This document shows, one piece after another, positions 20,573 to 63,035 of a stretch of DNA of 64,000 bases. The stretch is from the NCBI GenBank assembly GCA_964035545.1, contig OZ037768.1, forward strand, positions 6,232,741 through 6,296,740, given 5' to 3'. Source of the DNA: Bugula neritina. Its lineage: Eukaryota > Animalia > Bryozoa. The notes under the pieces are model-generated. The model was not told the DNA's origin. It saw only the letters and a list, made by a program, of their open reading frames with translations, and did no database searches. Made by a program: the position numbers and the translations under genes. How positions within the stretch are numbered: position 1 is the stretch's first letter; each line of letters opens with the position of its first letter.

Positions 20573-21699
20573 CCAATGGGTGAACGGGATGAAGCAGTGC
20601 GTTCATTGGTTACTATTAATGTTAGCATTTTTAGATGTTAATTTATTGCATTCTTTATTGTAATCCTTTCTGTGGGCTTTAAACTAGGTTGACACTTTCA
20701 ACTCAATATTTGTTAGATGGCATCAAATTTGCTTGGTGTATTTCCATGTCTGTATTATACATAATTATTATATTACAATATACAAGTGACTGTAAAAACA
20801 ATTAGTTATTTAATTCATAATTAATTGTAAATTATTGTATAGTTTGAGCAATGAATTATGATTAGAATATTATCATAATACACCTGAGGTCTTACAACCA
20901 ACATACTTCGAGACTATGAAGGGGTATACTCCAATATTGATCAATTCAGGTGTAATGCTATGAACACTAACTTGTATAATAATTTATATGACTGTGACAT
21001 CAGTATATCTATTTGCTTTTAATACTCAAAGCACTTTATCTTTGTTATGCTTTTGTAGTATATATGCTGCTCAGTAAATTATTATATAATAATATATGTA
21101 ATATATTAGTAATATATTAATGTAGAGCAACCATCTTCACTTTAGTACAAATTAGTAAACATTACAATATTTCTAAAAACATAATAAGTTAATTAGCTGA
21201 TACCCTTCATGCAGTGGTAAATCATGGTGGCAACTAAGTTTAAGAAGAGTTGTAAAGGAGGAAAATTATATGCATTTCTAGTGCAGTCGAAATTCATATC
21301 GATGCAAGGATTCAAGGTCGTTCAAAGCCATGACAAGGATGAGTTTGCCAAAATTACAAAGTTATATACTCATATAGAAACTAAAATATTTTGCTCTGCT
21401 ATTGAGAGATGACACAGCCTGTCAAAAATTAAGTGGGCTGTAGTGTAAAAAGGTCATTTATGCATGGAATTTACAGTCATTAGTCATCAACCTTGGTTCA
21501 ACTATATGAATTTTAAATCTGTTCTTGATGAGTCAATAAAAATGATAGGCCTACCATAAATTATAATGTCGGAATACAAGCAGTTTGAGAGGTAATACGG
21601 CCATATACTAAATTCTAAAATCTAGATTATTCCAATGATCGAAGGTGTAGCGTTGTGATATTTCGGAATTGTCTTTTCGAATATTAACACTTTTTAATC

Positions 21700-21836
21700 A
21701 AGCGAGAGGTTACGTGAATAAACACGTGAAGCGGCCATTTCACTGCATTTAATTGTCCCTGAGGAAATTAGGGAAGTAAATGAATGAAGTTGCGCGCCAA
21801 AAGTGCCGCTAAAAAGTTTCCCTATACAGTGAAAAA
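21700..21836 (+). promoter_or_regulatory. CpG-containing KPNB1 promoter/5'UTR with an E-box and a YY1-like motif
   Basis: CACGTG at 21723-21728 and GCGGCCATTT at 21731-21740, in a locally CpG-rich patch just upstream of the KPNB1 ATG. Confidence 0.4.
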
Positions 21837-24800
21837 ATGTCAACTGAAAAGCTTGTACAGATTCTAGAAAAAACTTTAGCTCCAGGTAAGGCAAGAAGTT
21901 AATTGGATTTAATGATTTGATCTCAATTTAAATTTTGAAATTCAACACTAACTGAACTCTAAGTCAACGTGAAAGTCTTAGTCTAAAAGCAACAGCAAGA
22001 CTAGCTCACCAAGTTAAACTCACACCGACAGTGACAATTGAAAATAAAATTGAATAACTTAATGTGAAGCTATGTGTAAACTTTCACTTCGACTTTGGTG
22101 AATAAAACCGAGTACTAACTACTACTAGTCAGACTCACGCTCAGCAGTTACTAGTTTATAGTTGGAGTTAGTGTTGCAGTGACTAATAAATATAATAATA
22201 GTTATAATATTAATATATACTTCTAGTTTATAATTATTATTTAGTAATTAATTATGAATAACTGTCAGCTCGCGTTGTGACTGAACTCATAATATTTTAA
22301 CCTGAAGCAAAGTTAAAAATAAATATTTGCATTCAAATTTGAAGTTTTCGGTTCAGATTGCTTTTTGTTGCACTAAATCTTATCAGTTTTAGTTTGCAAT
22401 GGCCTAGTAGAAAAGTACAAAACTTGTTGAAACTTTTGTAAAGCATTACTATATTAATTTTGTCATTTACAAAAGGGAGACCAAAACATGGGGAAATTCA
22501 AATTGTCTTTTTAGAGCAATTTCAAATAAATATAATCAGGCAGTTATTTGTAAAATACAGTGAATTGGTAACCCAAATATTGACATGAATAGGTGTGGAT
22601 TTAGATTAAGTAAAGGCAACTTAGTAGTTTTCTATATCTAGTCTGAATCGATACCCATTTAATGTTCTGATGTTATGAGCATAATAAGAAAGACTTAAAA
22701 CTGTGATTCTGAATCGAAATTTGTTCTTCACTCTATAAAGCTTTTACAATATAAAAAGGCAAACAATAGTACGTCAAAAACCTTTACTTCATACAATTAT
22801 AAGGCACTTGACTTGTTATAACATTGAATTTGTTTTGTCCTGTGCATAGCCAATTTTTATGAAGTCAGTAACTGTTGACACTTATAATTACATATGTAAA
22901 AATCGCCAAGTGAAAAGAGACCTTCAAGTTATAAGTGTCAGCTTAGTGTTTAATGTGGCCTTGTCGTTGATTCATCCAGTGATAAATTGCATCATGGCAA
23001 ATTATTAAGAAAACAAATCAAAATTTTAAAGAATAAGTATTTTCAATAGATTCAAGGATAGCTGCAAATATTACAATTGAAATTGATGCTGTATAAGACA
23101 TTTGCAATGATATTAACCAAGTGGTATTCACTATTCAGTATAAATAACTTTATTCTAATCTGCTTGCAGACCAAAATGAGTTACAGGCAGCAAAGCAATA
23201 TTTGGATCAAGCGGCATCTGTAAACCTGGTAAGTGGATCTCATATAGTTTTGCAAGTTGAGAAATAATCTATAGCCTTTGGAACTGCTGTTGTCCACTGC
23301 TAATCACCATATTGGGTGATTGTGTTTTATGGCTATATACTTGTGTTGTAGCCTAATTTACTGACTTCTCTATCGGAAATCTTGAGAAATGGAGGAAACA
23401 GCCAAGTGGCGCGAATGCAAGCTGGTATCCAGTTGAAAAATCATCTATACTCAAAGGACTTTGACATTCGGTGTCAGTATCAACAAAGATGGCTAACATT
23501 CCCCGAAGAGATGAAAGCGTTCATAAAAACAAATGTAAACAGCCTAAAATCATGTTTTCAAAATTTATGTAGCTTTTTCAACCTCAATTAAACATAATAA
23601 TGTACTTGATAACATTTGTTAGGTTTTGTCCACTCTTGGATCAGAGCATCGGCCGAGCCAGGCAGCGCAGTGTGTAGCTTCAATCGCATGCGCGGAGTTA
23701 CCTCAGCACCAATGGCCAGATCTCATTAAACTTCTAGTTCATAATGTCACGGCCACCACCAGTACGGAGATGATGAAAGAAGCCTCACTGGAAGCTATAG
23801 GATATATTTGTCAGGACATTGTAAGCCCTTACAGTGTGATTGAGTTGCAAAACTTTCACCTACATGCTTAAAGTTGTATCTGTGTGTCCAGTGATTTGTT
23901 GCTAAATAGTTTTAATAAATAAAACTGATGGTAAATACCTTAAGGCTTAAAGTTTGCATGAACCATTTTGTATAAATCACATTTTGTAGATGGAGCCTGT
24001 ACACGTAGATGTCACAGTTATTATCAAGTGACTGATATTTTGTTTTATGTTGTGTGCATCTATAACTTCTGCGATGCTTATATGGCTTGTTTGTTGAAAT
24101 TTGGTTTTTATATTCAATTTTCAAAGGAATCCGATGTGCTGGAAACACAGAGTAATGATATTCTAACAGCTATTGTTCACGGCATGAAAAAAGATGAGTC
24201 CAGTGATTACGTGCGACTAGCGGCTACAAACGCTCTTCTCAACTCCCTAGAATTCACCAAAGCTAATTTTGACGTAGAGGTAATTATTTTATTGCAACTG
24301 GCTGCATGCATCTGTTACTAGGAGATTTGATATTGTAGCACCACACAGTCTCCACAATAGACTTCATTGAGCCAAATGTAGTGTATGTGATTTTCAAGTG
24401 GCATATATCGTAAGAACATTTGTATTACATAAAAGTTGCGACTCAAAATGATTTCATCTTTAATGTGTGGATTTTTACTGTATTTTCAACAATTAGCTTA
24501 GCATTGTTTTGCTCTTGATTTATTTTAGACGGAAAGAAATTTCATCATGCAAGTGGTTTGTGAAGCTACACAGTCTACAGATATCCATGTGAAAACGGCT
24601 GCCTTGCAATGTTTAGTGAAAATTATGTCTTTGCACTACACTTACATGGAGAACTACATGGGCCATGCTTTATTTGCCGTAAGTATGCTGCAAGTTTTTC
24701 ATGCCAACACTTAACAAGACAAATATTTGTGTGAAATTAAGTACAAATAGCAATATTTGGCGTTCTTTGATTCCTAGCGCCTGGGTTCATTACGTAATTC

Positions 24801-27800
24801 TGCTCTAAATTCTCCGAGTATTAGCAATTAAGTTTATAAACGTAATAACGCTTATTTGAATATCTGATCACATTTGTATCTAATACAACAGGTCGCTTTG
24901 ATATCCGTGACTTTCGGCATATGTGCACTACTATTAATTAACTTGCGAAATGTTGCTGTGTGGCAGTCCTCCAATTAGTCAGGGTTATCTGCCCATTGAG
25001 TGGAAGAGTTTATTCCTACAGTTTCAGTCGACTCACTGCAAGTTGTTTCAGGCTGCAGCATTGGCTTAAACAAAGTTTTTCTAATTGCAAGAGAAGGGCA
25101 TGGTAGCGTCTATATGCCTGTACACAAGTGTTGGTGTAACCTGGCGTACAGTGATATATTGAATATTGCAGATTACGATAGAGGCTATGAAATCTGAACA
25201 CGATGAGATAGCCCTGCAGGGCATAGAGTTCTGGTCTACAGTGTGTGACGAGGAAGTTGACCTTGGCATAGAGCTGCAAGAGGTAACCCGGCTATAGCTT
25301 ACCTTTTACTTTGCTGCTGTCACCTACTTATATATAGCTGCTGTATTATATAACCCTTGCTGTGTGCTCTTTAGGCACAAGAAATCGGCAGAGCACCTGA
25401 CAGAACTAGCTGTCACTACGCAAAAGGTGCCCTGGCATATCTCGTCCCCATTCTCACTGAAATCATGACCAAACAAGTAAGTGACGCTCAACACCCTTAT
25501 TATACAATAGATCATTGTAGTTGTTGCTCTAGTTCAGGTTTGTCTGCTCACGCCACACTCTCCTGTCCCTAGGATAATGAGACCGAAGATGACGATGAGT
25601 GGAACCCGTGTAAAGCTGCTGGAGTGTCTCTCATGTTACTAGCCACCTGCTGTGAAGATGACATCGTGCCTCACGTGCTGCCATTTGTTACACAAAATAT
25701 TAACCTGCCTGATTGGAACAAAAGAGATGCCGCCATTATGGCTTTTGGTACGTCCTGTATCCAGCCACATGTTTGAGCTTTTAAATTGTACGCTTATCTC
25801 CGTAATTGGTGTTTATCTTCAGACAATCAATAACCTTGCTATTTTGATTCTTGCCATTCCTAGCAGATCAAACTATACTTACATACAAAGTTTACTAATA
25901 GGATCGATACTCGAAGGACCCGACCCGGATAAGATGAAGCCTGTGGTAGCTGAGGCTATGCCTAGTCTAATAACACTGCTCAAGGACCAGTCGCCTGCTG
26001 TGAGAGACACTGTGGCGTGGACAATCGGCAGAGTTTGTGAGTTGCTGCCAGAAGCAGCCATTAACCCGACGTTCCTGGTGCCGCTGGTTGAGGGGCTGGT
26101 GGTGGGGCTGGACGACGTTCCCAGAGTTGCTGCTAATGTCGCCTGGGTTTGTAGCTTCTGTTCATATCACAGAATCAACATGTAAGCCATTGCAGCATCT
26201 AGTTTCGTTTAATTAAACTAAAAGTTTTATTGGCTGTCTCTTAATGTTGGCAGGCGTTCTCCTCCCTGGCTGAGGCAGCGTATGACGAGGCAGCACAGCA
26301 GGCTGACGAGCCGGATACTTACTGCCTCAGCTCCGTGTTCTCACCTATTGTGGAAAAGTTGTTGGCTACGACAGGCAGAGCAGACGGTGAGCAATCTTTT
26401 ACTAGATAGTCATGTGACCAAGTAGTCATGTGGCTCAAGAACTCTTACTATCTAGTCATGTACAAGTCTTTGAGACCAAACATGCCTCTGCGTATAGTCA
26501 CCATTCCTGTGAGAGTCCAGATGGTAAGGGCTGTTAGGCAGCCTCAAACTATGCTGACTGTTCCTTGTATCCCCGGCAGCCTAACAGCGTGTGGTACACT
26601 AGTCTGGCTCATGTAACCACAGCTGCTCGCTATGTTGTGTGTGTCTGTATGTATGTGTATACATTAAGTACGTGTGTATTACTAACAGGAAACCTAAATA
26701 ACTTGCGGAGTGCCGCGTATGAAGCACTGATGGAGCTGATAAAGAATAGCCCCAAAGACTGCTACGAAGTGGTCAAGAGAACGACTGAGATAATCCTACA
26801 AAGATTACAGACAATCCTGCAAATGGAGGTAGTCTATCCTCTGCTTATTCTTATTCTGTTATTATGACGGTGACCATGGATTTACCTTTCTCTGGTTTAA
26901 ATAGCATTTTTCTTGCTAGTCTGTACAAGTAGCCATTTGCCTGTGTATAACTCGTGCTATTCTTACCCCACCCAGTATATTCACTGATGAGTTAGCTAAG
27001 TGAGCCAGTCTGGTACTGCATGCTATACACTGTGTGTGTATGCAGTACCAGACCTACCTGCTCTCTTAGTGTTAGTTTAGTGATAGAATAAACAGAGTAA
27101 AGAGTGGGCAGGAGATTCTCTTGTTCTAAGTGACTCCTTCCCGCTCATTGCTTGTCAACTTCTTATTGAGTTGATGTCAGCCCTGTGCTACACGCAGCAT
27201 TCTTATTGGCTGATCTCATAGTTGTAAGAAGTACACGACCTTCAGTTGTCCTTAACACAACTTTTAGGCTGCCAAAAATTTTGTCAGTAAAAAGTTATTT
27301 ATGTTGGATCCCTTCTTGAACTTACTGTGCCTACATTTTGTACTTACTCTACTTACTCTACTTACTCTACTCAAGTTATTGTACTTGCTGTTTGTAGTCT
27401 CAAGTTCACAGTTCCTCGGACAGGGTGCAGTTCAACGACCTCCAGTCCCTGCTGTGCGCCACTCTCCAGGTAACACCTTCTTCTGCCTTACTCTGACCTG
27501 CCACTACACTCGCAGGGTGCTGGTCTTCTGGTCTCTCTAACTTCATCTCATGCTAAGCAGCTGCAGACTGTTCAGTATGAATAAAGTCCCACACTGTTGA
27601 ATGCATAGCTAATTAGCTCATGCCTTTTATTGGGGGTGGGATGAGTAGCTGCTACAGTTTTTCACTTTCCATATTGATGCTGCGAAAACAAATAGACTTT
27701 CCAATCTATTTCCCTTCTGTTTGGTTGCCTGTAGCATACACCAGTTCCGTAATATATTCACTTTACTAGTTGCAAAGTAAAGACTGCTTCGTTTAATTTA

Positions 27801-30361
27801 CTTTTAACACATTTTCAACTGATTTCTAGTTGAACGAAAGTTTATCAATCAAGTACTGTCTGTTAATAGGTTGATGTGTTCTGTGTTTGTAGAGTGTTCT
27901 GAAGAAGGTGACCGGAGAAGACGCTCTTCAAATCGCCGACCTGATCATGCAAGCGCTGCTGCAGATGCTGCACTCGTCTAGCAACAGCGGCGGCAGCACC
28001 TCTCAGACTAGTAGCGGTGGTGTTCAGGAAGATGCCATGCTGGCCATATCAGCTATGATAGAGAAACTAGGGGCTCACTTTGTCAAATACATGGAAGTGT
28101 TCAAACCAATCCTCATCCAGTCCCTTAACAACTCTGCTGAATACCAGGTATTGGAGTTGTTATGTACTTCCCGTGTTGGTGTGAAGCAGCTTAGTGGCTG
28201 AGGCCCAGTTTGAGGTCCCTTAATCTCATCCCGGCATTCGTGTTGCCAGGAGAAACTTATTGCTGCTCCTAAAAATTCTACTATCCACAAAATCTCCAAT
28301 TTAGCGGTAAACACAGTTTGAGAGTGTGCTGTAAAACATTGTGTATATTCTCTCCAAAACCTGTCATCAAAGGTTACATTGTTGAGGTTATGGTTTTACT
28401 TTATCTCTTCTATACGAAGCGTTGACATTAGCATCACTTGCTTAATTCCTAAAACTCCAAGTTTTACTATTCTCACCTCACCCAGTATATTCACTGATGA
28501 GTTAGCTAATTGAGCCAGTCTGGTACTGCATGCTATACACTGTGTGTGTATGCAGTAGCAGACCTACCTGCTCTCTTGGTGTTAGTTCAGTGATAGAATA
28601 AACAGAGTAAAGAGTAGGCAGGAGATTCTCTTGTTCTAAGTGACTCCTTCCCGCTCATTGCTTGTCAACTTCTTATTGAGTTGATGTCAGCCCTGTGCTA
28701 CACGCAGCATTCTTATTGGCTGATCTCATAGTTGTAAGAAGTACACGACCTTCAGTTGTCCTTGACAGCTAATGACATCTCTTATATATGCAAAGTATTT
28801 CATAGTAAACTGTTTTGTAGGTGTGTTTTGTTGCCGTCAACTGTGTTGGTGACTTATGCAGAGGGCTAGGGTTGCAGATGAGAGAGCATGTGAATGACCT
28901 CATGCCCATTCTACTCAAAATACTCGGGGTAAGTTTCCACTCCTGTGTTACCAGGCAATGCTTTACTCACCAGATAGTCAGCTGGGACGGTAAATCACCG
29001 TGTCAGTGTTACTCTGGTGACAGAATAATATGAGAATGCTGGACACTGACTCTGTGCTTGTTTTAAGCATGTCAGTGTCTGGCTTTCTATATGCGCCTCT
29101 GAGAGTTGGCTTAGGCCCAGTGCCTCTGCCATAGTTTTGAGGTGTACAGGTTATTCCGCTATACAGTAATATGTAAGTAAGGACAGTATTGTCCTGTAAC
29201 AGCTGATGCGCTGTAAGATTCTACGTTCTTCACCTTCACACAGGATGACAAAGTTGACAGAACAGTGAAGCCAGGAGTACTGAGTGTGTTTGGAGACATC
29301 GCACTCGCCATTGGCTCCGAGTTCGCTGCCTACCTGCCCATTGCTGTCTCCACTTTAGAGCAAGCATCTAACGTCACAGCTCCTAAGGTTGGTTCTATAT
29401 GCCTGTGGTAACACTTACTGCTCTTTCCTGCTTGTCTATACTGTGTATACACAGAGAATATCTACACTGCATAGTTATATACTCTTATTGCCTGTTTGCA
29501 GGGAGACTATGATATGATAGACTATGTGAATGAGCTCAGAGAAAACTGTCTGGAGGCCTACACGGGTATAGTTCAGGGTCTCAAAGGTGAAAATGGCTCT
29601 CAATGTGCGTTCTTAACGTTTGCCTGTTCTTTTTCTAAACTGAAACGTTCTTCTGTTTGTGTTTGTTTCTACAATGTTACATCTGTTCAGTGTTTTGTTG
29701 AACAGACACTACATGTATTACTATACAGCTGTCACATTGTACATATATTGCTATACAACTGTCACATTGTACATATATTACTATAAGGCAGTCGTGTGTA
29801 TATTTCAACAGCTAATGTGGAGCTGCTCCTACCTCATGCTCAAAAAGTTGTCAGCTTCATAGAAGCCGTCTCTGCTGACGTAGAGAGAACCGACGGTGTG
29901 ACGTGCGCTGCCTGTGGTCTCATTGGGTAGGTGATGACTAATCTGTTTCTGTGTTTAGTTTTCTATTCAGTCGAGTAGAGATTAGATCGTGATGTTGGTA
30001 TCATCTGGTGGTTCTCCCCTCTGATTAACTTGGCTTATGCTCACCAATGCTTTTGTAGCTGTACACCTGTCTTATGTCATGAAATTGGCTGAATATTTTG
30101 TGGAAAAGAATTTGTGTTGTGTAAACTTGGTGCATTTTTAATGATCAATTTCAGCAAATGTTTGAAAATGAAATGGAAATAATTGTGGTGAATATTTACA
30201 GAGACCTGGCGATGGCGTTTGGTGCGCAGGCCATACCTATGAGTGAGAAAGATTCCATCACAGCTCTGCTCACCGCCGGCAGACGCTCTAAAAATAGTAA
30301 AACTAAGACTCTGGCTGTGTGGGCCACCAAAGAGCTGAGGAAACTGAAACCAGCCAGCTGA
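21837..30361 (+). CDS. KPNB1: Importin subunit beta-1 (karyopherin beta 1), ~18 exons
   Basis: First exon 21837-21885 [16 protein letters not shown], then [12 protein letters not shown].., [183 protein letters not shown], and [13 protein letters not shown] before TGA at 30361. All are characteristic importin-beta motifs. Confidence 0.97.
26420..26601 (+). ncRNA. Candidate intronic H/ACA-type RNA with U17/snR30-like motifs
   Basis: Stem ATAGTCA/TGACTGT closes an internal loop with CCATTCCTG and AAACTAT (cf. U17 m1 AUAUUCCUA, m2 AAACCAU). There is an upstream hairpin containing ATGTACAAGTC and an ACA at 26596. No clean H box, and the ACA is not at the canonical distance from m2. Confidence 0.3.
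26980..27238 (+). ncRNA. SNORA74: U19/SNORA74-like three-hairpin H/ACA snoRNA, long variant, copy 1 (KPNB1 intron)
   Basis: Hairpin 1 has pockets GAGTTA / GTTAG, then box H AGAATA (27085-27090), a middle hairpin GAGTGGGCAGGAG...CTCCTTCCCGCTC, and a 3' hairpin ACTTCTTAT...GTAAGAAGT with pockets GAGT / TAGTTGT followed by ACA at 27233. The pockets pair (with G-U) to 28S helix 69 GUAACUAUGACUCUC. Confidence 0.7.
28490..28748 (+). ncRNA. SNORA74: U19/SNORA74-like H/ACA snoRNA, long variant, copy 2 (KPNB1 intron)
   Basis: Near-identical duplicate (about 5 substitutions over ~285 bp, offset +1510) of 26969-27253, with the same H box, ACA and guide pockets. Confidence 0.7.
28967..29151 (+). ncRNA. 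SNORA74: U19/SNORA74 H/ACA snoRNA, compact canonical form (KPNB1 intron)
   Basis: CACCAGA-TAGTCAGCT...AGTGTTAC-TCTGGTG, box H AGAATA (29022-29027), a middle hairpin, then GCGCCTCTGAGAGT...TAGTTTTGAGGTGT and ACA (29146). Pockets AGTCA/GTTAC and GAGAGT/TAGTT are perfect guides for the two helix-69 uridines in GUAAC-U-A-U-GACUCUC, the known U19 targets. Confidence 0.85.
29712..29788 (+). repeat. Short tandem repeat (~30-nt unit ctatacarctgtcacattgtacatatattr) in a KPNB1 intron
   Basis: About 2.5 copies visible. Confidence 0.75.
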
Positions 30362-38571: not shown

Positions 38572-41500
38572 TCAACATCCCAGCCAATACTTGTGTATTG
38601 AATAAGGAGTTCCATGAACTGTAGCTCTGAGCATATCATTCACTTTATAGACTCTAAAACATCAGCATTAGAAGTCTATATATAACCATATATACTCTTT
38701 AAACTTTGCCAGACGGAGGGCCAAGCATTGGTGTGCTGCGGCATACAAAACTATCAGATCATGCAATGCTAAGCTGAGGAGTTCATGGCATATATAAAGT
38801 TTAAATAGGTTTATTAAAATGGCATAAAGTTCTATGAAAGTATTTGAGCTTGAAATTCATTAAAAATCCTAATATGGACATAAAAATAAACTTTATGCAA
38901 TCTAGATGATTACATAGAATACAAATAATAAATTAAGCTCCTCAACGCAGCCCACACATGCCTGCAAACTTTCACGCAGCTGTGTACATCTAGCACAAGC
39001 AAATCTTAGGACTTGTATTACGAGTTTAGTTCCTAATCTCACAATACAACGTGTAATGCTTACTTGGACCCTTTAAAGAAGAATATAGAACTGGAGCCAT
39101 CCCACACCGCAGCTTCAGGATTGTGTGGGGCGTCATGAAACACCCCCTTCATGTTGCCAACTTTACTTAATTTAAGCAGAGATTCTCTAAACTTGTACAA
39201 CTGCCTCTCCTGGTTATAGGTATAGGTAAAACATTCAGTAAAAGCGGTTAAGTAAATGCAAGATAATTAATGCAAGTCCGAATCTTAATATAATCTTTTT
39301 TGCTAGTTTTTATTTTATTCAAAGGTGATATATTATTACTTACAGCAATGATGTATATATTACCGCCTCGCCAGGCGAAGGCAGCTTGTATATTCTTGAT
39401 GGTTCCAGTTGCCATGACAACAGGAAAGCCTCTGTCTAACTTACTTTTATAATATCTCCATACTTTATAACCTGCAAAATGAATTTAATAATTAATAGTT
39501 TATAGGAACAATTTTATAAGCAACATCACATACATGTAGTAGTTGTCTTACCTTTAAATACGTACAGACGGTGGGAAATAGAAGAATAAGTTACAGCATC
39601 AGGGCTATCAGGAAACTCTTCATACAATTTGTGGGAAAGCTTAGGCCAGCCATCTTCTATCTGCAACAGGTAAATTTCACTAGATATACTATGCAAAGAG
39701 GGAGGTTGGAGAGGGAGGAGGGGGTTTGGAGAGGAAAGAGGGGGTTTAGAGAGGAAGGAGGGGGTTTAGAGAGGGAGGTCGGAATTTAAAGAGGGAGAAG
39801 GGGGCTTGGAGAGGGAGGAGGGGGTTTGGAGAGGGAGAAAGGGATTTGGAGAGGAAGGATGGAGTTTAAAGAGGGAGGGGGGGTTTGGAGATGGAGGAGG
39901 GGGTTTGGAGAGGGAGGAGGGGGGCTTGGAGAGGGAAGAGGGGGTTTGGGAAAATAACTCCCTAAACATGGTAAGCTAGGCATGTTATCAAATCACTTAC
40001 TGCAGTATTATTCTTGTTAAGTTTGTAAATCCATTGTTTTCTAAATATATAATATCTGTTATCAGGAAGTTTGATGACATCATCAAATCTAAGTTTGCAT
40101 GGATTTGGTACTGATTCACCAACTGCAGTATTTAGTGGAGTAGAACTTAACCTGGTGCCTGAAGACAGAAATAGTGAGTAATTTTGTGCGTAAATTTAAA
40201 TTATCACAATGCATGTTTTATACACAATACTGTGGAGGCTTTCTAATAACATATTGCTACAAGTTCAACACGTGTACAACTACATAAAACCACATATTTA
40301 GGGCGAAACATCAAACACACATGAAATTATAATGTGCGTTGATTAAACTACATGCAATCATTTAACATTCTATAGCCAAGTCGTTAGGATAACATAATCC
40401 TAGGCCTTGTATATAACATGGTAGATAACTATTATAACGTCTTATACCTGTTTCTACTCAAAAAGCATACAATGTATTGCTGAAAACTGTAAGATGGTAA
40501 ACATATACATTTACAATATGTGAATGTGAATGCAAATGAAATAAACAGCTCTTATGAGTTTTAAAAAGCTGGGGGAAACAGTACACCACCTACAAGGTTC
40601 ATACAGTAACATTGCATGAGCTACAATTTCTCATATACTCATGACTTCAACCTACCATACAGTTTCTGTATAGCCTCGATATCATCTTGGTGTAGGTGAA
40701 ACTTCTTTTTATATCCTTGATAATAAGGGGCCATCACTGCATTATAGACTTTGGAATGTTTCAGGCCTTTAAACATTATGATAAATAAATACATATTTAT
40801 ATATCTAAGTATTTTATAAGCCACGTAAGTTTACACATGCATTATATTATTTTAGAATAAAAGAGTATGTGATGTTGTGCATAATAATATTTCAAATAAC
40901 CTAAAACATGGCCGAATTCATGAGTTGCAATGTTCTCCAAATACTTTTCACCGGCAGCGTTACTCACTGACCATGACTCATCATCATCAAAATGGACTCG
41001 TCCATCATTTGGGTAAAATGCATGAGCCAGGATTCCATCTGTAAATCACAAAGTTTTATATAATAATCAACATCATTACTTATTATAAGCTGAAATGCAT
41101 TTTATATTAGTTTATTTGTGTTGTATATTGGGTCACATTATTTTATTTAGTATACACTGAAAGAATAGACTGGGAATGAAAAGTCATGATTAAAAATCAA
41201 CAAATATGGCTATGATTTCAATTATGTAGTAATAAAAAATGGCCAGGCTAGAGGGGGGGGGGGAGAAGCTAGCAATGCTCAACAGCTTTGTCTAATCAGC
41301 TAGCTAGAATGTGCTTACTGAAATTTTTAGCAGATCACCTGAAATTTAAAGCAGCAAAATTGCTATTTTTGGTGTATACAAGAAGTAGCAAAGTACTTGG
41401 TTAGCAAAAATTAAAGTATCTTTGCTGCTGTACAAACAATCAAAACCTGCATTCTATGTTGAAAAACTTTTATAATCTTAACTAGAATATGCTAAACCTA

Positions 41501-44500
41501 CGTCACTAGATAATTGTTGGAAGGATTTTTTGCTAATGAGAGTTCGAAGGCACTTGCTAATGAGAGAAATATATTTTTTAATGAAACTTATTACAATTCA
41601 GTATGTTTTCTTTGTCCACACTCAAACAATAGAAATATACTGATTGTGTAATTCTAAAACCGTTTTTTAAAATTGAAAGTTTTTTTTATAAACTGAGCTC
41701 ACCTCAATTATAGCTTTCAGCTTAAAATTTATGCATCCGCCGCTTTGTTTCTCTGTGTACAATAACACTGCTATTTTCTTTTTTTGCACACCAATGTGTA
41801 ATTGCAGTATGCTATAAGCTTAAAAAGTAAGGAAAGTTTTTAAATTACTTTACCAACAACTTTTATAGAATGTTGGTATATTTTATTACAGCTTTCCTAC
41901 ATTAAATTGGTGTATTATACATCTAAAAAGAATGACTCAGTTCTTGGTTCCTTTCCAAATTCATATATTTCTGTAGAAAATCACAACATGTTTACAATCA
42001 AATGCATTGTAATTTATGCAGACTTTTTGTATTCTTCAAGAGCTCTAGCTGCAATGGCTGGTCCAGCAACGGTAGGAATGTATGGGTTGATTGCCTCACT
42101 CAAAGTGAACTGCAAGTCTTTGCCAAACAGATTTACTGTGACTTGCACACCACTGAATCCTCCATTACCAGCAATAGCTGAGGGGTTGAAAGCCATCTTT
42201 GTGATGTCATAGTTTTGCTGTTTTATTCCCATCATCCAGGCTCTTTCCTGATTGGCTGCCTTAATTTCATCTGTTGCAGCTTTATAACCAGGACAAGCTA
42301 CAAACAAAATTGTATATCTCCCCTAACCTATGATAGAAAATCTAAGATCTCTTTGGAATAAAGTTAGAAAATGCTACAAATATTAATTTTGTTCTAACGA
42401 GCTTTACATTCATACAAAGTGCTTATGCTGCAGCTGTTTTATAAAATTTTACCAAAAGAGCCAAAATTGGTTAAGAGTATTTCAAGAAAAAACTGTCTAC
42501 TAAAATGTATACACAAACAGCAATGTATATTATTGAATATATAGACCTTTGTTAGCATCGAATCCGCAGTCACTGCAGTATTGAGGCTGGAGGTAAAACT
42601 TGCAAGCATTTTCAGGGTCATTCTCAAAGTTACCACAGTTAGGTTCACTGGCTCTCTTGACAACCTGGGTCACTTCTCTCTCTGAAATCAAACAGTTGAA
42701 TGTAAAAAATTATTTCTGATTTTATAGAAATTGTAAAAAGAATGCAACTTATCTGAATTTAGTGTTTGTGTGCAGCTACTAATTAGCAATAATAAAGAAT
42801 AAAGGATAATCCATAGATGAATTCTATATAAACGACAAAGCATATTATTTAAAACTATATTTTTCAACGTGTTTAGCTAAAGTTAGCACACAGTGTATGA
42901 TATAAATGACTTGTAGATACTTACTTCCAAAGAGACTTCCAAATGCTTTTCCAATTTTACTGCCAAGGTTTTTGCCAAAGTCGGCAATTTTACTGCCTAC
43001 ATCCTTTATTCCATCAATAGCTTTGCCGACCCCACTTCCAATAGTTTTTCCAATATCAACCACACCACCACCAATTTTCTTACCAATGTCGACAATACCA
43101 TCAATAGCCCCTTTACCAATGTCAACAACTCCTGCAACAAAATGGCTGTCAAATCTCACAAATTTGAAAGTGTCATATATAAGCTCTTAATAAAAATCTG
43201 TTTTAACAAAATTGGTTTAATTGCATGAAATTCAGTGCTTGGTTATTATAAGAATAAGTGTGAATATAAGTGAGTAATAATCACCATTGCCAATGGTCTT
43301 TCCAAAGTCTTCAAGTCCACCTCCAATGGTATCTTTGAAGAAGCTGCCAATATCTTTTCCAACATCGATGATTCCACCACCAATTTTGTTGACAAAAACA
43401 TCTGGGATTGTCGAAGTAAAGAAGTTGGGGATTCCATCTTTGAAGAATCCGATAGTTTTACCAAGAACAACTTGCCATTTTTCTGGTTTGCAAACGGCCT
43501 TTGCCCTAAACAACAAGTTAGTTTTCAATATTGAATATAAAACTTGTTGAACATTGAATTATAATACTTTATCACATAAATTACACAAACCGCATTACAA
43601 CATATGCACTAACCTAGCTTCACACTTAGTTTGAACGCATGTTCTACACTTGGGGATAGCAGCACCCAACAGGTTGTTGCAGGTTGCGTTGATTGGTTTA
43701 AAAGCCTCAACAGCATTTGTCAATCTTTGGTTGTAAACTTTAATTTTAGCACTAATAGTTTCTATACCAGCATTTCTTACAGCTACAACATATGATATAA
43801 TAAATTGTGAGATAAACAAACATATTAACATGGTATTTCTTTAATATGTGTATACCATTGTATAAACAAAATTGCAACATTTTTGAAAAGGATACAGAAT
43901 TTCAATAAAGCATTTTAATATTTTTATCATATTAATGATGAATAAATAAAATAAAAAACATCATAGGTCAATATTATAAAAGATTTACTAACTTATTCTA
44001 CATAAATACCATTCATGAGTGAAATAATTCGTCCTAAACTACTTAAGGCCAAAAAAATGAAAAAAGGAAGATAGTAAAACTGACTTACATTGAATTGCTG
44101 ACGCTGGAACATCGACCATTTGAGAGTAGGCCACGCCCACAATAATGGCAACAAAAGCTAATAACTTCATGGTGAAAGTATTCTATGTACAGAGTGCAAT
44201 AAGAAAATGGAACTGAGTGGGAAACGGCAACTGTATTATACCACGGTTGTATCACTCGCTTTCATAGAATAAAGGGGTGGATAAAAAGGGTACATCTATT
44301 AGCAAAGATTCAAATACACAAATTATATAAAAAAAATAAAAATGAGATAATCAGAGTGGTAATCATTATTCTTATATGTATAATAACACGATTTTATTTT
44401 ATTTAAAAAAATACTGTAATAAAAATTTAGCTTATGTACCCCATAAAATGCACATGCAAAAACGGTAAATCCCCTAAATTGTACGCCTCGGTGATAGCTC

Positions 44501-47500
44501 GGTTATTGGAAGTTTAGATGCGGACAGTTACTCAGATACTATGTGAAGAAACAGCTGATACATGCGTATAGTGACGTATACATACACCAATATAGTAAAC
44601 ACTAACACATGGTGATTTCCATGATGTCAAAATAGTGCCCAAGATTATTAACAAAACATTAAAGCATGTTTTTATTGCATGTATTTTCATAAATTTGTTA
44701 TTATGATTCTCATCTCTGTTTTATTATTACTATGCGTCACTATTTTATATTCAGTCAGTATTAGTAATAGATAATTATAGTATAACAAATATTTACACTT
44801 TTTTGCTTTCTATCTAGTATTTGTATTACACTAGAATGATTCATATATTAGCAGTAACAGCAAAACTTTAAAACAATATTTTACATATTAACATAGTACA
44901 ATTTTTAAATACTTGTTCTCCTATTATGAGTTTGTAAATAGTATTTATGATCAGATAAAACATGAGCCTCATTCATTTACCTTTTCCATCAAATGGGTAA
45001 CCATCACCATGATCATCTCTCTCAAACTGTATTCGGATATCAGCTGATTCAGGTTGTGACTCGACAATATCAACAGCTGCAACTTCGCTCCATTTTTCAA
45101 AAGCGTTTTTGAGTGCCTGCCTAAAAACACAGAAAGAAACAACCTTCTTTTTGACTTGTTATATTAATGTAGGGTTACCACTGGCATGCTAAGCCATGTC
45201 TATCTTGAACGTTTTCTTGGCTTACGGTCACATTTTCTCAAGCATGGAAACATTTTTACCTCTGGGAGAATTGATAATTCCGGTTACAAAAGTAATGTAA
45301 ACAACAGGAATATGTGCAAGTCATATTAAAGGACCATGTAGTAGCTCAATAATGCATGGCTTTGCCATGCATAAAATATATTATTAATATTTGAGCAATT
45401 TACCATTTTGTAGCTGTTTGCTAAGATTTATCATATTACTACAACATTCAAATGCCAGGATCATGCTCGTATGGCCACTATACAACTGAAAGTTTGTCAG
45501 AGTTAATCTCACAAATCACTTTGATAAACATCTGAGTGAAAAGTTGTGTGGTGATCATGCCAATCAGCATTGTGCTGTGTTTTGACATAAAAGCTACAGA
45601 AATATATGTTGGAATATGTGTTCTCTAGCCAGAGTATGATCTCTTGACATGAATTATCCAACAACAGTGAAATAATCTTTTTAGTTATTATGACTATTTG
45701 TAAATCAAAGTTTGCTATAGTGCAGGTAGCAAAAAGGAGCTCATAAAAATTATCTAGAATAACTTTCGTATATGAATTGAGACATAAGCAATGGGAATTT
45801 TGCTGCTTTGATCACTTTTTGAAAGAAAAGCAAAATTATCGTTTTATTTTTGAAGTAATTTGTAAATAGTAAATTTCTAATTGAAATTTGAAATTCTAGT
45901 GCAGATTAATTTTACAGCTTTAAAAATAGCTTTTAACTTCAATTTCTCATAAAAACTACTATACATCATTAACTAATATAATAAGATAATGTAAATGATA
46001 TAATAACAATAATCATGAGCTAGCAACGATGATGTCGTATATAAACACTGTAGCTGGGAATAGTTGAGTTTATCACAACCCAAAGGGCCATGTATCATAA
46101 TTTGAGGTCATAAACCAGTTTGGTATTAATATAAGTCTACTATTACACTGTACACTAATTACCTTTGAGCAGCTAATGGTAGACTACTGGAAGGCTTTAC
46201 TAAGCTCCATTTTAACAAAGTGACCTGCCCATTTCCTGTAAGAAAAGCATTGCACATAACTAGATAGTCAAACCTCAATTTGCAAGTTAATATGAAGTTA
46301 AGAATCTTGCATAGAATTAAATAATTAATATTAAAATGTCTACACTTTATGCTTTCTATTTGCGGCTCTCACAAAACCTGTTTATTGTAAAGAATGAAAA
46401 CATACTGCATACACAACAACAATCTGTAGTAATAAGTTTTAATATAGCGACACACAGTCATTATTAGCTAGAATCTGCAACAACACTTGGCAAAATCTGC
46501 ATAACAAGCTATTTAGCAATTTTAGATTAAAAGTTTCATTCATAAAAAAGATTCATGCTGGCTATTATAGAGAATTTCCATATGCAGTCAATGTCTGGTG
46601 TCAGGTCACTACATGCTATAACACAGAAAACTCAGTAGAATATGACAACCACCGCAAGGTGGAAGTTGGTGTCTGAACATACCATTGCTTGTTATCGTGA
46701 CAGTTTGATTCTCAACAGGCAAGACATCTGCATCTATGGTCAGACTGCTACGACTCTCTAGGGCGTTGAACTGGCTACTTCTACAACATCAGACATGGTC
46801 TAGACACAAGCTTATGGCTATCACAATAGACAGTTTGCACAGTGCATTCTGGTAAAACATTAAATTTTGTTGAAATGTGAAGTTGTGACAAAAGTGTTAA
46901 ATTAGTTGAAGTCATATTGCCACCAGCCATTATGAGGAGTAATAGTTGGAAATGCATGACAGTTGTGACTTATTCAAACAAAAGTTGCTATAAGCAACCC
47001 GGAGTTGGGGGTGACTGAGTGCAGTAGTGCAAAGTTTTTGAGTTTAGAATTTGGGGTTCAATGTAAAACCCCCAACTCTAGAACCAAGACTCCAAACTAC
47101 TGCACTCAATCACTCCCAGCTAGAGGCTGCTTATAGCAAGCTCTCATTTATACTTATATAATGTGACTTGCATGTTAATTTTCATTCACAGCACTAACAT
47201 ACCATGCATTAACCTAAAATGCCTTGGCATAACATGCACTGTATTATAATATTAGTTCAATTGTAATAAGGTTTCGTCTGATTAAGAAGTTGAAGGAGAC
47301 ATTGTCTGACTGAAAACAAATGCTGGCTAGATTTTAAGCTAGATTGAACTGTCATTGACCATTGCATGCCGGATTATTACAATGAATATATTTAGCATAG
47401 CCATGGTCACTGCTCGCTGTAGTAAAACACCCCATGATAAGATAGGACACAAATTCCTGACATCTATTATCTATATGCTTCCTTTCTTATCCCTGGTTGA

Positions 47501-59376: not shown

Positions 59377-59867
59377 AGTAATATTGCTAAAATCACAGTA
59401 GGGGTTACATTTGGATGATACAATTTAACCGCAGCTCATTTTGCTTTTGAAATTAAATTACTTTTCGAAAGTTACTTTGTAAAATAACTTACATACATTA
59501 TCACACTCACTGGTTAACAATTTCAAGCCACTAACTGAATAACTTTGAGCTTGCTATGCCCAGTAACTGTATATGTTTCTCATACTTGCAACTTTAAAAG
59601 AATTTAGCCCACTCACACTAATCTGAGATTAAACATAAAGTTTGTGATTTATATACAAGTTGTAACTGCAAGTAATCATTATTATACCAATATACTTATA
59701 TTTTTTTATAATCGTGCTAAATGAAGACAAAGCCTTATTCATATTCATGTAGGCAAAAAAATTGACCTTGAGAATGATACCTAAAAGCTTATGGCTTACA
59801 CCTCAACATCAATGTTCAAATTGACAGTACTATGCATTGTCGTTTTTGACAGACGCATGTCAATCAT

Positions 59868-59975
59868 CATCATTAGTCATACTAACAGTAATCGTGATAC
59901 TCATAGTGATTGTGATACTGATAGTCACACTGATGCTGATACTGATAGTGAATCGGAATGTGATACTCATACTTA
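59868..59975. repeat. Degenerate hexamer repeat (GATACT/CATAGT type)
   Basis: gtgatactcatagtgattgtgatactgatagtcacactgatgctgatactgatagtg... Confidence 0.75.
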
Positions 59976-60639
59976 GTGTAGCAGCCAAGAAACCATGAGA
60001 GAGATTCGAGTACTGTTAGAACTAACATTATTAAAAATATAATTTTTAGCACCTTTATTTGCGTTGAAAATTACTTCTCTATTTTATAAGCACGTAGGAC
60101 AAATCCTTAATTCATGTTGATGCTGACAAGAAAAACATTTATAAGGTTGCCTCGGCAACGTGGAAGTTTGCAGTTAAGTTTGTAGACCCGCAAATATAAA
60201 GCTAAAGATTCACAACAAAGTTTTGCATAAAATATTTATTTTAAAAGTTTTTATTAACAAAATATTTAAAAAAAATTTTTTTATTTTGTATTCTAAAATT
60301 TTATGGCTAGTTTGAAGCAATAATAATAATAATAATATAATAACCATTGCACTATAAGTTATAGTTTCAGTTCAGTGATAATAACAATCGAACAAAATAA
60401 AAACCACGAGAAGACAACTCGGTAAACGACTTTAAGGTTATCGAGATGTACTTTTATATCGCGAAATTAATTGTTGTCGCTATAAAGCGTACAGCCGCTA
60501 AATTGCAAGGCCGAATTACAGTTTATCGAAGGTGGTACTTGTTGCATCAAACACAAGAGCTGCTTACTTTTGTTTTGTTATTTTATGATAAATCATATAT
60601 GATATATTAGTCCTAATTTTATATACTATTCTAGGATAA

Positions 60640-60840
60640 AAAATTTTTAGTTTTCAATTTTTTTTAAAAAATGTCCATTCCTATGAGTACGAGTATGAGT
60701 ATCACTATCAGTATGAATACAGAATGAGAATAGTAAATCAGTTAGTGTTACTATTCTGTATTCATACTGATATTGATACTCATACTCGTACTCATAGGAA
60801 TGGACATTTTTTAAAAGAAATTGAAAACTAAAATTTTTTT
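60640..60840. repeat. Long inverted repeat (~80-bp arms) adjoining hexamer repeats; possible foldback/MITE
   Basis: TTTTAGTTTTCAATTT..AAAAAATGTCCATTCCTATGAGTACGAGTATGAGTATCA.TATCAGTATGAATACAGAAT is followed, after a short spacer, by its reverse complement. Hexamer repeats continue to ~61500. Confidence 0.85.
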
Positions 60841-63035
60841 AATTCTAAATATAATATCATAATCATACTGATACTCAGAGTCATACTCATACTCATAGGG
60901 TCAGTGATACTCATACTGATGCTGATAGTGATATTCATTGGGATTGAGTCATAGTCATACTCATAGTCATAGTGATACTGAATGAGTGACTGATACTTAT
61001 ACTTATAGTATAACTGGTCACTATAACTTAGTCTTATAGGTATAGTTATACTCATAGTCATACTCATAGTGATACTGATAGATTACTATGAGTTGTGACT
61101 TATGTGTAATCAGTATGAGTATCACTATCAGTATCACCCTGGCTTTGTCACTGTCAGTATGACTATCAGTATCACTCAGTATCAGTATGGGGATGAATGT
61201 CTGTAGACGTATTTGGGTAATGAATGAATCACTGAATGTAATTGTAACTAGTAAAGCTAAATGTAAATGTTAAGCCTAAAATTAATGAGGTAAACATAAT
61301 GTGATCACTTGAAGTTGAAGTTAATATAGCGATAATCATAATCATTATGATAAATTGATAATCATGATGATATTGATAATGACTAGATAAATTGAGTAAT
61401 CTCAACTCTGAGTTTCACTTGCGAGTTACTCCTAATCCTAGTCCTACTGTCCTACTCTTATGGTTACTTATACTATAGCTATTAGTCTTACACTTCGCTG
61501 TAAATTAAAATATATTTCTCATTACAATTATTCCAAGCATAAGAGCTTATAATCATGATATCGAATTTTAGACTATATAAAATTAAATAATAATTATAAA
61601 AACACTTAATTTTTTAAAATTTGGTTTATTAAAATCATAGCCAGTGATAACTATTAATATTAATGTGATTAAAATATGATTTAAAAGTTTTCGAAATTGA
61701 AGAAAGATTTGGAAATAAAAGTCAAGACAGAAGTGTTGCTCTACCAATAGTTTGCTCTACTCATTGGCAACATTAGAAACACTAGTGAAAACATATGTTA
61801 CGAATACATTATCCAACTGCTACAATGAATATGTATAAATATTTTATTACCAAGTGATCTCGCAATATGCATTCTATCACCTAACAGAAGTTGCATGGTC
61901 ACACTCTCCACTAGTAATACATTGAAGGATTTTAGTTTTATAAGCTGCTTATAAGTGTGAAAAAACTGCAGTAGTTTAAACTTGCTTTCTACCTGTAAAG
62001 GGCAGATATATTTTGCTGGCAAATGCAAAATTGATTTTACAGAGTTGATAAAATGTAACCATAAGCAAGTTGCTTGTCAACAGAAGTAATTTTTTAAAAT
62101 AAATGTATACTTTGTTTAGTAACGAAATAGTCAAGTATTAAACCTCAACCCAAAAGAAGTCTAGCAATAATAGATAATAAATAATTGTATCTAATGTTAT
62201 AATGTATTTGGTAGTCTAGGTTGATGGGTATATTGAAATAACATAATTGGGTGTCTCTAATTTGTTGTAGATGAAGGGTAATAAACTGTTGTATATATAT
62301 GAGCGCTTGCTTATATGATATGGGTTTAGACTTGAGTGTATCATTGTATTTCACATATCAATGAAACAATTGTGAATTAGCAATAGTGCTGCATTAAATG
62401 TCCAACTCATTCCATTGGTAATTTATCATACTGAGATTTGTGCACAATGTCCACATGCATTTAACCCTAGTAATTTAGTTTTATTCCTCAACTTTATACA
62501 AACAAAAGAAAATATTAAATATGTAATATCTACTATAACCTATTACCCTATCTTTTAACAAATTTATATCGCTAGCATGTATTATGGCTACTGTCAAAGA
62601 TTTTGATATTGGTTTCATTGATCAATATTTTTTGATATTGATAAATTTCGTTTGATTAGGTTCAGATTCAGAAATAAGGCATTACTAATGTTAAAAAAAT
62701 TTGGCCAAGAAATAAAGATATTTTAGATTTACCATTTATATTACCATGTTTTGTTACTGTTAATTTCTTTGTAACTTTAAGAAATATTGATGATTTAAAA
62801 CACTACCATGCCTAGGTGAAGTTGTATTAGTTGTCTACACTTTGTATCAGCACTACCTGTTCAACTATTGCACTATGTAATATTATTTACACCGTTCTCC
62901 ATTAAATTTTCAAGCAAATTTATTGTCAGCTTATTTTGTTCGAAGTTAAACATTTCACTAAATGTAAATAAGACTTCAATATTTTTAAATAATAATGCTT
63001 TCTTGGCAGTTGGGTGAAGACTGTTTCCAAGGAAA

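Follow-up and report, generated by a model that had tools for sequence, protein, structure and literature searches.

A clusterin-like gene in the bryozoan Bugula neritina, with unnamed relatives in four invertebrate phyla, suggests a bilaterian age for the clusterin fold

Clusterin (apolipoprotein J, CLU), an Alzheimer risk gene product, is a main extracellular chaperone of mammals, and to our knowledge few extracellular chaperones are known in invertebrates. It has been called a conserved vertebrate glycoprotein (PMC12527946). In the human protein, helix 3 has short helices zigzagging along its length, and the last helix is wrapped by a sheet of three strands and flanked by helix 1 (PMC12527946). 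The tails and helix 7, which lie by its cleavage site, are what drives its chaperone activity as well as receptor binding and the formation of lipid discs, and the tails reach full activity against amyloid-beta only once cleaved at the furin site (PMC12527946). Here we describe a clusterin-like gene in a 64,000-nucleotide (nt) stretch of the Bugula neritina genome (contig OZ037768.1, positions 6,232,741 to 6,296,740; hereafter the window, to which coordinates refer). The encoded secreted-type protein is very probably homologous to clusterin.

The gene lies on the minus strand and has six exons, whose 1098 nt encode 365 amino acids (aa) and a stop codon without an internal stop. Its five introns (306, 108, 153, 243, and 249 nt; phases 1, 2, 1, 1, and 1) are all GT-AG. 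A sequence-only reading of the window had proposed this spliced reading frame and a signal peptide, and both hold up. An oligo-dT RNA run (X17) has contigs across all five exon joints, two further runs guessed to be RNA cover four of them, and the N-terminus is hydrophobic, a signal peptide by inspection, as it is in all full-length relatives. A run that holds the whole stretch unspliced in one piece shows no joints. The gene is real and is expressed as spliced RNA. The RNA runs derive from other strains, and the listed strain differences include 14 silent codon changes and seven residue changes, none at a cysteine; other strains also carry an in-frame 12-nt deletion at 42961, within the exon 4 repeats. 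Two RNA-guessed runs have a contig reading from exon 1 into intron 1 (window 43978-44170), either a retained intron or pre-mRNA. The features of the gene are as follows.

44089..44170, minus strand: exon 1, with the start codon, signal peptide (~residues 1-16), and first mature residues; a phase-1 intron falls in codon 28
43614..43782, minus strand: exon 2, N-terminal helix/short coiled-coil arm, the N59 sequon, and C62, C73, C76, and C81
43285..43505, minus strand: exon 3, C89, a predicted helix, and the onset of the Gly-rich amphipathic region
42925..43131, minus strand: exon 4, 11-mer amphipathic repeats ending in Phe-Gly ahead of the predicted cleavage site
42653..42928, minus strand: predicted convertase sites Gly226-Lys227-Arg228 (split by intron 4) and Lys235-Arg236, with the Gly as amide donor
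42547..42681, minus strand: exon 5, C242, C253, C262, and C265 of cluster 2; a phase-1 intron falls one residue before the last Cys
42014..42297, minus strand: exon 6, C273, return helix, three-stranded sheet, C-terminal helix (a domain like the clusterin alpha/beta roll), and the stop codon

The cysteines form two clusters of five, at residues 62, 73, 76, 81, and 89 and at residues 242, 253, 262, 265, and 273. As the sequence-only reading had pointed out, the spacing of cluster 1 (10-2-4-7) is identical to that of human clusterin, and cluster 2 (10-8-2-7) resembles the human 9-6-2-7; the human spacings were taken from an alignment with the clusterin structure 7ZET. Across all six reading frames of the 64-kb stretch, the spacing of the four exon 2 cysteines turns up once. 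The protein has a single N-glycosylation sequon, N59. Between the clusters stands an aromatic-Gly-basic-basic motif that is present in all full-length relatives, usually followed by a second basic site, and the Gly and the second basic residue are invariant in the family alignment A3. A Gly-basic-basic sequence is the usual signal for convertase cleavage, trimming, and amidation. An internal Lys-Lys at 175-176 is kept in the Watersipora orthologue and in relative P0026 and is absent from Lingula and amphioxus; this upstream dibasic site is limited to bryozoan-like sequences.

We compared the family with known structures. Database searches used single exons or natural full-length relatives, and structures were modelled for relatives from the brachiopod Lingula and the bryozoan Watersipora. 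The AlphaFold models were made template-free, and 7ZET was released in 2023, after the AlphaFold2 training cut-off. The model of the short Lingula protein (predicted local distance difference test, pLDDT, 82.6; predicted template modelling score, pTM, 0.70) runs from an N-terminal strand through a long helix, short cluster-2 helices, a return helix, and three strands to a C-terminal helix, and this modelled layout matches the fold described for human clusterin. The sequence-only reading had suggested a Foldseek comparison; on the models of relatives, it places human clusterin first for both. Among 350,542 chains, the top three for the Lingula model are human clusterin (E 7.3e-6, 9.7e-6, and 5e-4; next 0.14), and clusterin is also first for the Watersipora model (E 2.6e-3). 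VIA-align against 48,161 chains gives 7ZET a Z of 8.8 for the Lingula model (201 residues aligned, root-mean-square deviation [rmsd] 15.8, residues 25-445; next 5.2), 7ZEU a Z of 9.3, and clusterin a Z of 8.6 for the Watersipora model (237 aligned, rmsd 16.5, residues 25-445; next 5.8). These alignments thus cover clusterin from one end to the other, as far as 7ZET residue 445. In the ESM Atlas, the Lingula model matches a Clusterin cluster with a template modelling (TM) score of 0.63 (205 aligned, 4.4 A). Atlas searches by features gave no usable match for P0014 or the Watersipora protein (P0018), and the Atlas's own poor P0018 model (pLDDT 0.47) returned weak rows only. The discontinuous three-domain fold, with coiled-coil, disulfide, and alpha/beta roll-like domains, is present in both the Lingula and Watersipora models, with a shorter coiled coil.

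The shortening is matched on the two arms. The N-terminal arm falls 35 residues short of its human counterpart (Gly33-Cys62, 29 residues; human Gly38-Cys102, 64), and the return arm 36 residues short (Cys273-Trp292, 19; human Cys313-Trp368, 55). The human Trp368 position is consistent with V369/A373/T376 in PMC12527946. Lengthening of both arms of an antiparallel coiled coil would explain the high rigid rmsd, and a paired shortening of this kind in two antiparallel helices itself points to common descent.

In a separate observation from the Atlas, a cluster of 136 members represented by an 883-aa chordate trypsin-domain protein matched residues 1-250 of the Lingula model (TM 0.52, 153 aligned, 2.9 A); this cluster may hold a hidden clusterin-like domain. 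A literature search gave no link between this protein and clusterin; PRSS56 as its identity is our unverified guess.

Profile searches point in the same direction. Both Lingula proteins have Pfam Clusterin (PF01093) as their best-scoring family (E 1.4e-4 and 8.9e-4; 21.4 and 18.8 bits). A family profile aligns to 7ZET in four colinear stretches, namely the mature N-terminus, cluster 1, cluster 2, and the C-terminus (E 0.074), and with a profile of the N-terminal half, 7ZET comes out first among 177,635 sequences (E 0.0064, next 1.1). Over the region of exon 2, this N-half family profile matches 7ZET residues 25-55 and 89-147. Taken alone, this sequence evidence would be suggestive and not sufficient. 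Clostridial Toxin A rows for exon 2 were discarded as summed weak repeat matches without a passing stretch, as were designed helical bundles, SHERP, and haemagglutinin stems, which are drawn by composition when the profile includes the repeat region.

Intron positions are a further line of comparison. The phase-1 intron one residue before the last Cys, which the sequence-only reading had singled out, is present at codon 272 and recurs in Watersipora, both Lingula genes, and amphioxus. The same genes also share a phase-1 intron that precedes a conserved Gly by five residues. In Lingula, amphioxus, and a paralogue on contig C5 of the Bugula genome, the first strand of the C-terminal domain is followed by a phase-0 intron, which the window gene and Watersipora lack. 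The equivalent introns of human CLU are presumably phase 1 in E33, phase 1 in D312, and phase 0 after T388. In published accounts, Met34 opens the reading frame in exon 3, with exon lengths of 126-412 bp (PMC10488069), and, after subtracting 52, the exon 6/7 border falls within 293-317 and the exon 7/8 border within 388-393 (PMC3296573). These accounts bracket the human positions without fixing them, and are consistent with three intron positions shared with human CLU.

A search of 1.84 billion representatives with exon 6 found the family in Lingula, in several Branchiostoma proteins, and in a chiton. The named relatives are XP_013383260.1 and XP_013383274.1 (Lingula, two paralogues of 370 and 267 aa), XP_035668320.1 (Branchiostoma floridae), XP_064616295.1 (Liolophura), and Watersipora protein P0018; they have the same architecture and most of the intron positions. 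All are annotated "uncharacterized" or "hypothetical", and none carries a precomputed Pfam domain. Closest is the 365-aa protein of Watersipora subatra, 62-68% identical exon by exon, whose gene has five introns with the same phases. Full-length members have a signal peptide, cluster 1, an amphipathic middle, the Gly-basic-basic site, cluster 2, and the C-terminal domain; a few amphioxus gene models are without some cysteines. The large repeat proteins P0002, P0005, P0008, P0010, and P0012 from the exon 6 search were excluded as multi-stretch chance matches.

In the relatives, the genes occur in tandem (two copies in Lingula, three in amphioxus, and two in the chiton), and the Bugula assembly (216 Mb, 321 contigs) contains three further paralogues at C5:2814.7-2830.0 kb, one on the minus strand and two near-identical in tandem on the plus strand. 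In the third of these, the middle seems to be short and the Cys spacing changed. In a tree of the C-terminal region, the window gene groups with Watersipora-like sequences (82/91) and the C5 copies form a separate group (97/93, with a long-branch warning), so this duplication is probably old. The two tandem chiton copies (Liolophura L026:8287-13974 and 19772-23974) have His-rich 11-mer repeats; the 152-aa Liolophura database protein is a truncated model of the first, and in the second the cluster-1 exon is followed by a 49-nt tandem array whose units repeat the Cys-bearing end of that exon.

With relatives in lophotrochozoans and amphioxus, the family is placed at the bilaterian ancestor. The sequence-only reading had called the protein a protostome member that would push the family back to early bilaterians, and its closest relative is indeed bryozoan, with further relatives in brachiopods, molluscs, and amphioxus. 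The spread of these unnamed relatives over four invertebrate phyla suggests a fold no younger than the bilaterians. Word-indexed homologue searches, which are insensitive and missed P0003 itself, returned neither a vertebrate clusterin nor any member from cnidarians, arthropods, annelids, or echinoderms. A literature search, incomplete in coverage and leaving room for an existing database assignment, found no paper on an invertebrate clusterin; a mention in oyster concerns clusterin-associated protein 1 and was set aside.

The segment separating cluster 1 from the predicted cleavage site is a Gly-rich region of ~135 residues with 11-residue periodicity. In exon 4 (26% Gly, net charge +3), identity autocorrelation peaks at 0.42 at lag 11, and the hydrophobic moment is 0.51 at ~99 degrees; the amphipathic part of exon 3 has a moment of 0.44. 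Neither moment was reached by any of 5000 shuffles. An amphipathic periodicity of 99-100 degrees recurs in the middle region of all relatives, with lengths of 42-143 residues and net charges that vary (+6 in Watersipora, -7 in Lingula, -18 in amphioxus, and -28 in relative P0022). The repeat region is modelled mostly at pLDDT 20-35, and residues 99-217 of the Watersipora model are disordered. The repeats are rich in Gly/Ile/Val/Lys/Asp, and the Phe-rich, Lys-poor tails and amphipathic helix 7 of human clusterin are not present.

Several results weigh against a clusterin identity. No single exon matches PF01093 in Pfam or 7ZET in the Protein Data Bank (PDB); the best relatives (21.4, 20.1, and 18.8 bits) stay below the Pfam gathering cut-off of 23.6 bits; the Watersipora orthologue has no Pfam match, and the amphioxus proteins do not match Pfam Clusterin; and a profile of the C-terminal half does not find 7ZET. 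A PF01093 search of the Bugula genome likewise gave no match at this gene and one elsewhere (E 5.9), which was disregarded. Furthermore, a Z near 9 is within the common range of VIA-align for helical proteins, the rigid rmsd is 15-17 A, and the composition of the tail differs from that of the human tails. These sub-threshold scores and high rmsd, with 10-18% identity and a mainly helical fold, are what a convergent, non-homologous disulfide-stapled helical hairpin would give. We consider such convergence very improbable, since the Cys spacing, the colinear profile matches at both termini, the matched arm shortening, and, probably, the intron positions agree independently, and three different structural searches on two models concur. 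Because the Pfam cut-off is missed and the vertebrate tails and glycans are lacking, we file the protein as a remote sister family within the clusterin fold, not as a plain PF01093 member. Of the divergent clusterin that the sequence-only reading had proposed, homology is supported, by profile and structure, and plain membership is not, as the protein lacks the Phe-rich tails, helix 7, and heavy glycosylation; the Pfam profile it had named as a check is top for the Lingula relatives, short of the cut-off, and is not matched by the exons.

The whole clusterin-like gene is nested, on the same strand, in a predicted intron of a matrix metalloproteinase (MMP) gene; like the 11-mer repeats and the Gly-Lys-Arg site, this nesting had no place in the sequence-only reading.

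44981..45120, minus strand: MMP catalytic-domain exon (PF00413 match), upstream of the nested gene
41039..44980, minus strand: 3942-nt GT-AG intron of the MMP gene, predicted from the flanking exons and containing the whole clusterin-like gene
40655..41038, minus strand: MMP catalytic-domain exons on the downstream side of the nested gene, including the zinc-binding HExGH motif

The exons flanking this intron match consecutive PF00413 positions (22-74 and 71-121). In Watersipora, an 11-residue stretch 91% like the MMP exon end (L021:9613-9645) lies ~355 nt upstream of the orthologue, lacks a donor site, and is possibly a relic of the same nesting; no further MMP exon was found within 10 kb of the orthologue, and none near the Lingula, amphioxus, chiton, or C5 paralogue loci. 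The nesting is local to this genome, and no functional link is shown by it. Elsewhere in the window, three repeats were noted: a purine-rich 20-nt tandem repeat with G-runs in the downstream part of the MMP gene region (39679-39949); a 300-nt duplicate, 97% identical, inside an importin-beta gene region (26957-27256 and 28467-28766), probably an intronic repeat or mobile element; and degenerate 6/12-nt tandem repeats at 59856-61153, with a 132-nt inverted repeat at 60605-60873.

We propose the following mechanism, drawn largely by analogy with human clusterin. The two Cys clusters would pair across chains in five disulfides. A proprotein convertase would cut at Gly-Lys-Arg and at the second Lys-Arg, releasing a short spacer and leaving two tethered chains, the first of which would end, given the conserved Gly, in an amidated aromatic residue. 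Such two-chain processing of the precursor is, by this analogy, quite probable. The freed tail of ~135 residues would be disordered in solution and, on meeting lipid or an exposed hydrophobic surface, fold as an 11/3-type amphipathic helix, thereby doing the job of the Phe-rich tails and helix 7. Because the tail is located as in human clusterin and resembles the lipid-binding repeats of exchangeable apolipoproteins, we favour, as a reasonably likely function, an extracellular apolipoprotein-type lipid carrier that would also act as an ATP-independent holdase.

Other roles were weighed. The clusterin fold might instead serve as carrier or prodomain for an amidated, membrane-active peptide of the antimicrobial type, cut from the repeats, for example at Lys-Lys 175-176. 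The Gly/Lys-rich amphipathic helix does end in Phe-Gly-Lys-Arg, a classic amidation signal, exon 4 and the Watersipora middle are positively charged (+3 and +6), the Lys-Lys is retained in Watersipora and P0026, and the chiton repeats are His-rich. We nevertheless regard this role as unlikely, as the region is acidic in Lingula, amphioxus, and P0022, and Lingula and amphioxus are without the internal Lys-Lys, so that their tail would stay attached to the disulfide core. A protein co-regulated with the host MMP through nesting, be it a partner or regulator of that MMP, a structural protein of the matrix, or an adhesive, would fit the same-strand position in a catalytic-domain intron and the MMP-exon-like stretch in Watersipora. 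This too is improbable, given that the latter is a mere 11-residue remnant, that the other loci examined have no MMP exons nearby, and that nesting is common and shows no interaction. Slighter still is the chance of a neuroendocrine granule protein or prohormone (granin/proSAAS-like) with the amidated aromatic C-terminus as its signal: the aromatic-Gly-basic-basic motif and second dibasic site are conserved in all full-length relatives, but no short peptide is conserved before the Gly, and tail length ranges from 42 to 143 residues.

A family spanning bryozoans, brachiopods, molluscs, and amphioxus moves the origin of clusterin to the bilaterian ancestor. Natural minimal versions, such as the 267-aa Lingula protein, retain the disulfide and alpha/beta domains and alter the tail; they allow one to ask what the first role was (lipid transport, chaperoning, or defence) and what the disulfide domain does alone. 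We tentatively suggest, as a scenario that may well prove wrong, that the first form of clusterin, in the bilaterian ancestor, was a compact scaffold stapled by disulfides and displaying a convertase-released, amidated, lipid-binding amphipathic tail. This form would persist in lophotrochozoans and amphioxus as an undescribed apolipoprotein/chaperone class, and vertebrate clusterin would have arisen from it by a five-heptad lengthening of both arms and a tail swap.

Among known systems, exchangeable apolipoproteins, perilipins, and synucleins are alike in 11-residue periodicity, strong hydrophobic moment, and lipid-free disorder; the likeness is in working only, and the repeats here are inserted in a disulfide-bonded scaffold. 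No Pfam match to any of these families, the apolipoprotein repeat families (ApoA-I/E type) included, was found in single exons or relatives. Precursors of amidated antimicrobial peptides (cecropin/dermaseptin type) also have a Gly/Lys-rich amphipathic helix followed by Gly-Lys-Arg, whereas the helix here is much longer and attached to a folded core of, as predicted, two chains; a cationic peptide with convertase sites on both sides is not conserved, with net charge running from +6 to -28 across the family. The Lingula, Branchiostoma, Liolophura, and Watersipora relatives likewise differ among themselves in repeat length and charge.

The closest described system is clusterin itself (CLU; PF01093; 7ZET and 7ZEU). 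In common are a signal peptide, a predicted basic cleavage site between the clusters, a separation of ~152-155 residues between the two Cys clusters, the same cluster 1 spacing, probably three intron positions, and, as modelled, the discontinuous coiled-coil, disulfide, and alpha/beta roll-like domains. Cluster 2 is spaced 10-8-2-7 or 10-6-2-7 in the family, compared with 9-6-2-7 in human. The Bugula protein has 365 aa rather than 449, and both its coiled-coil arms are ~35 residues shorter; cleavage would fall only 13 residues before cluster 2 instead of 57, with no alpha-tail or helix 7, and where human clusterin has its third long helix and Phe-rich tail, there are Gly-rich 11-mer amphipathic repeats. 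It has a Gly-basic-basic amidation signal and one sequon, compared with six N-glycans in human, and the invertebrate family has several paralogues per genome. Clusterin-like protein 1 (CLUL1) is the vertebrate paralogue with the same Cys framework; relative to CLU and CLUL1, the invertebrate family would be either co-orthologous or a sister group.

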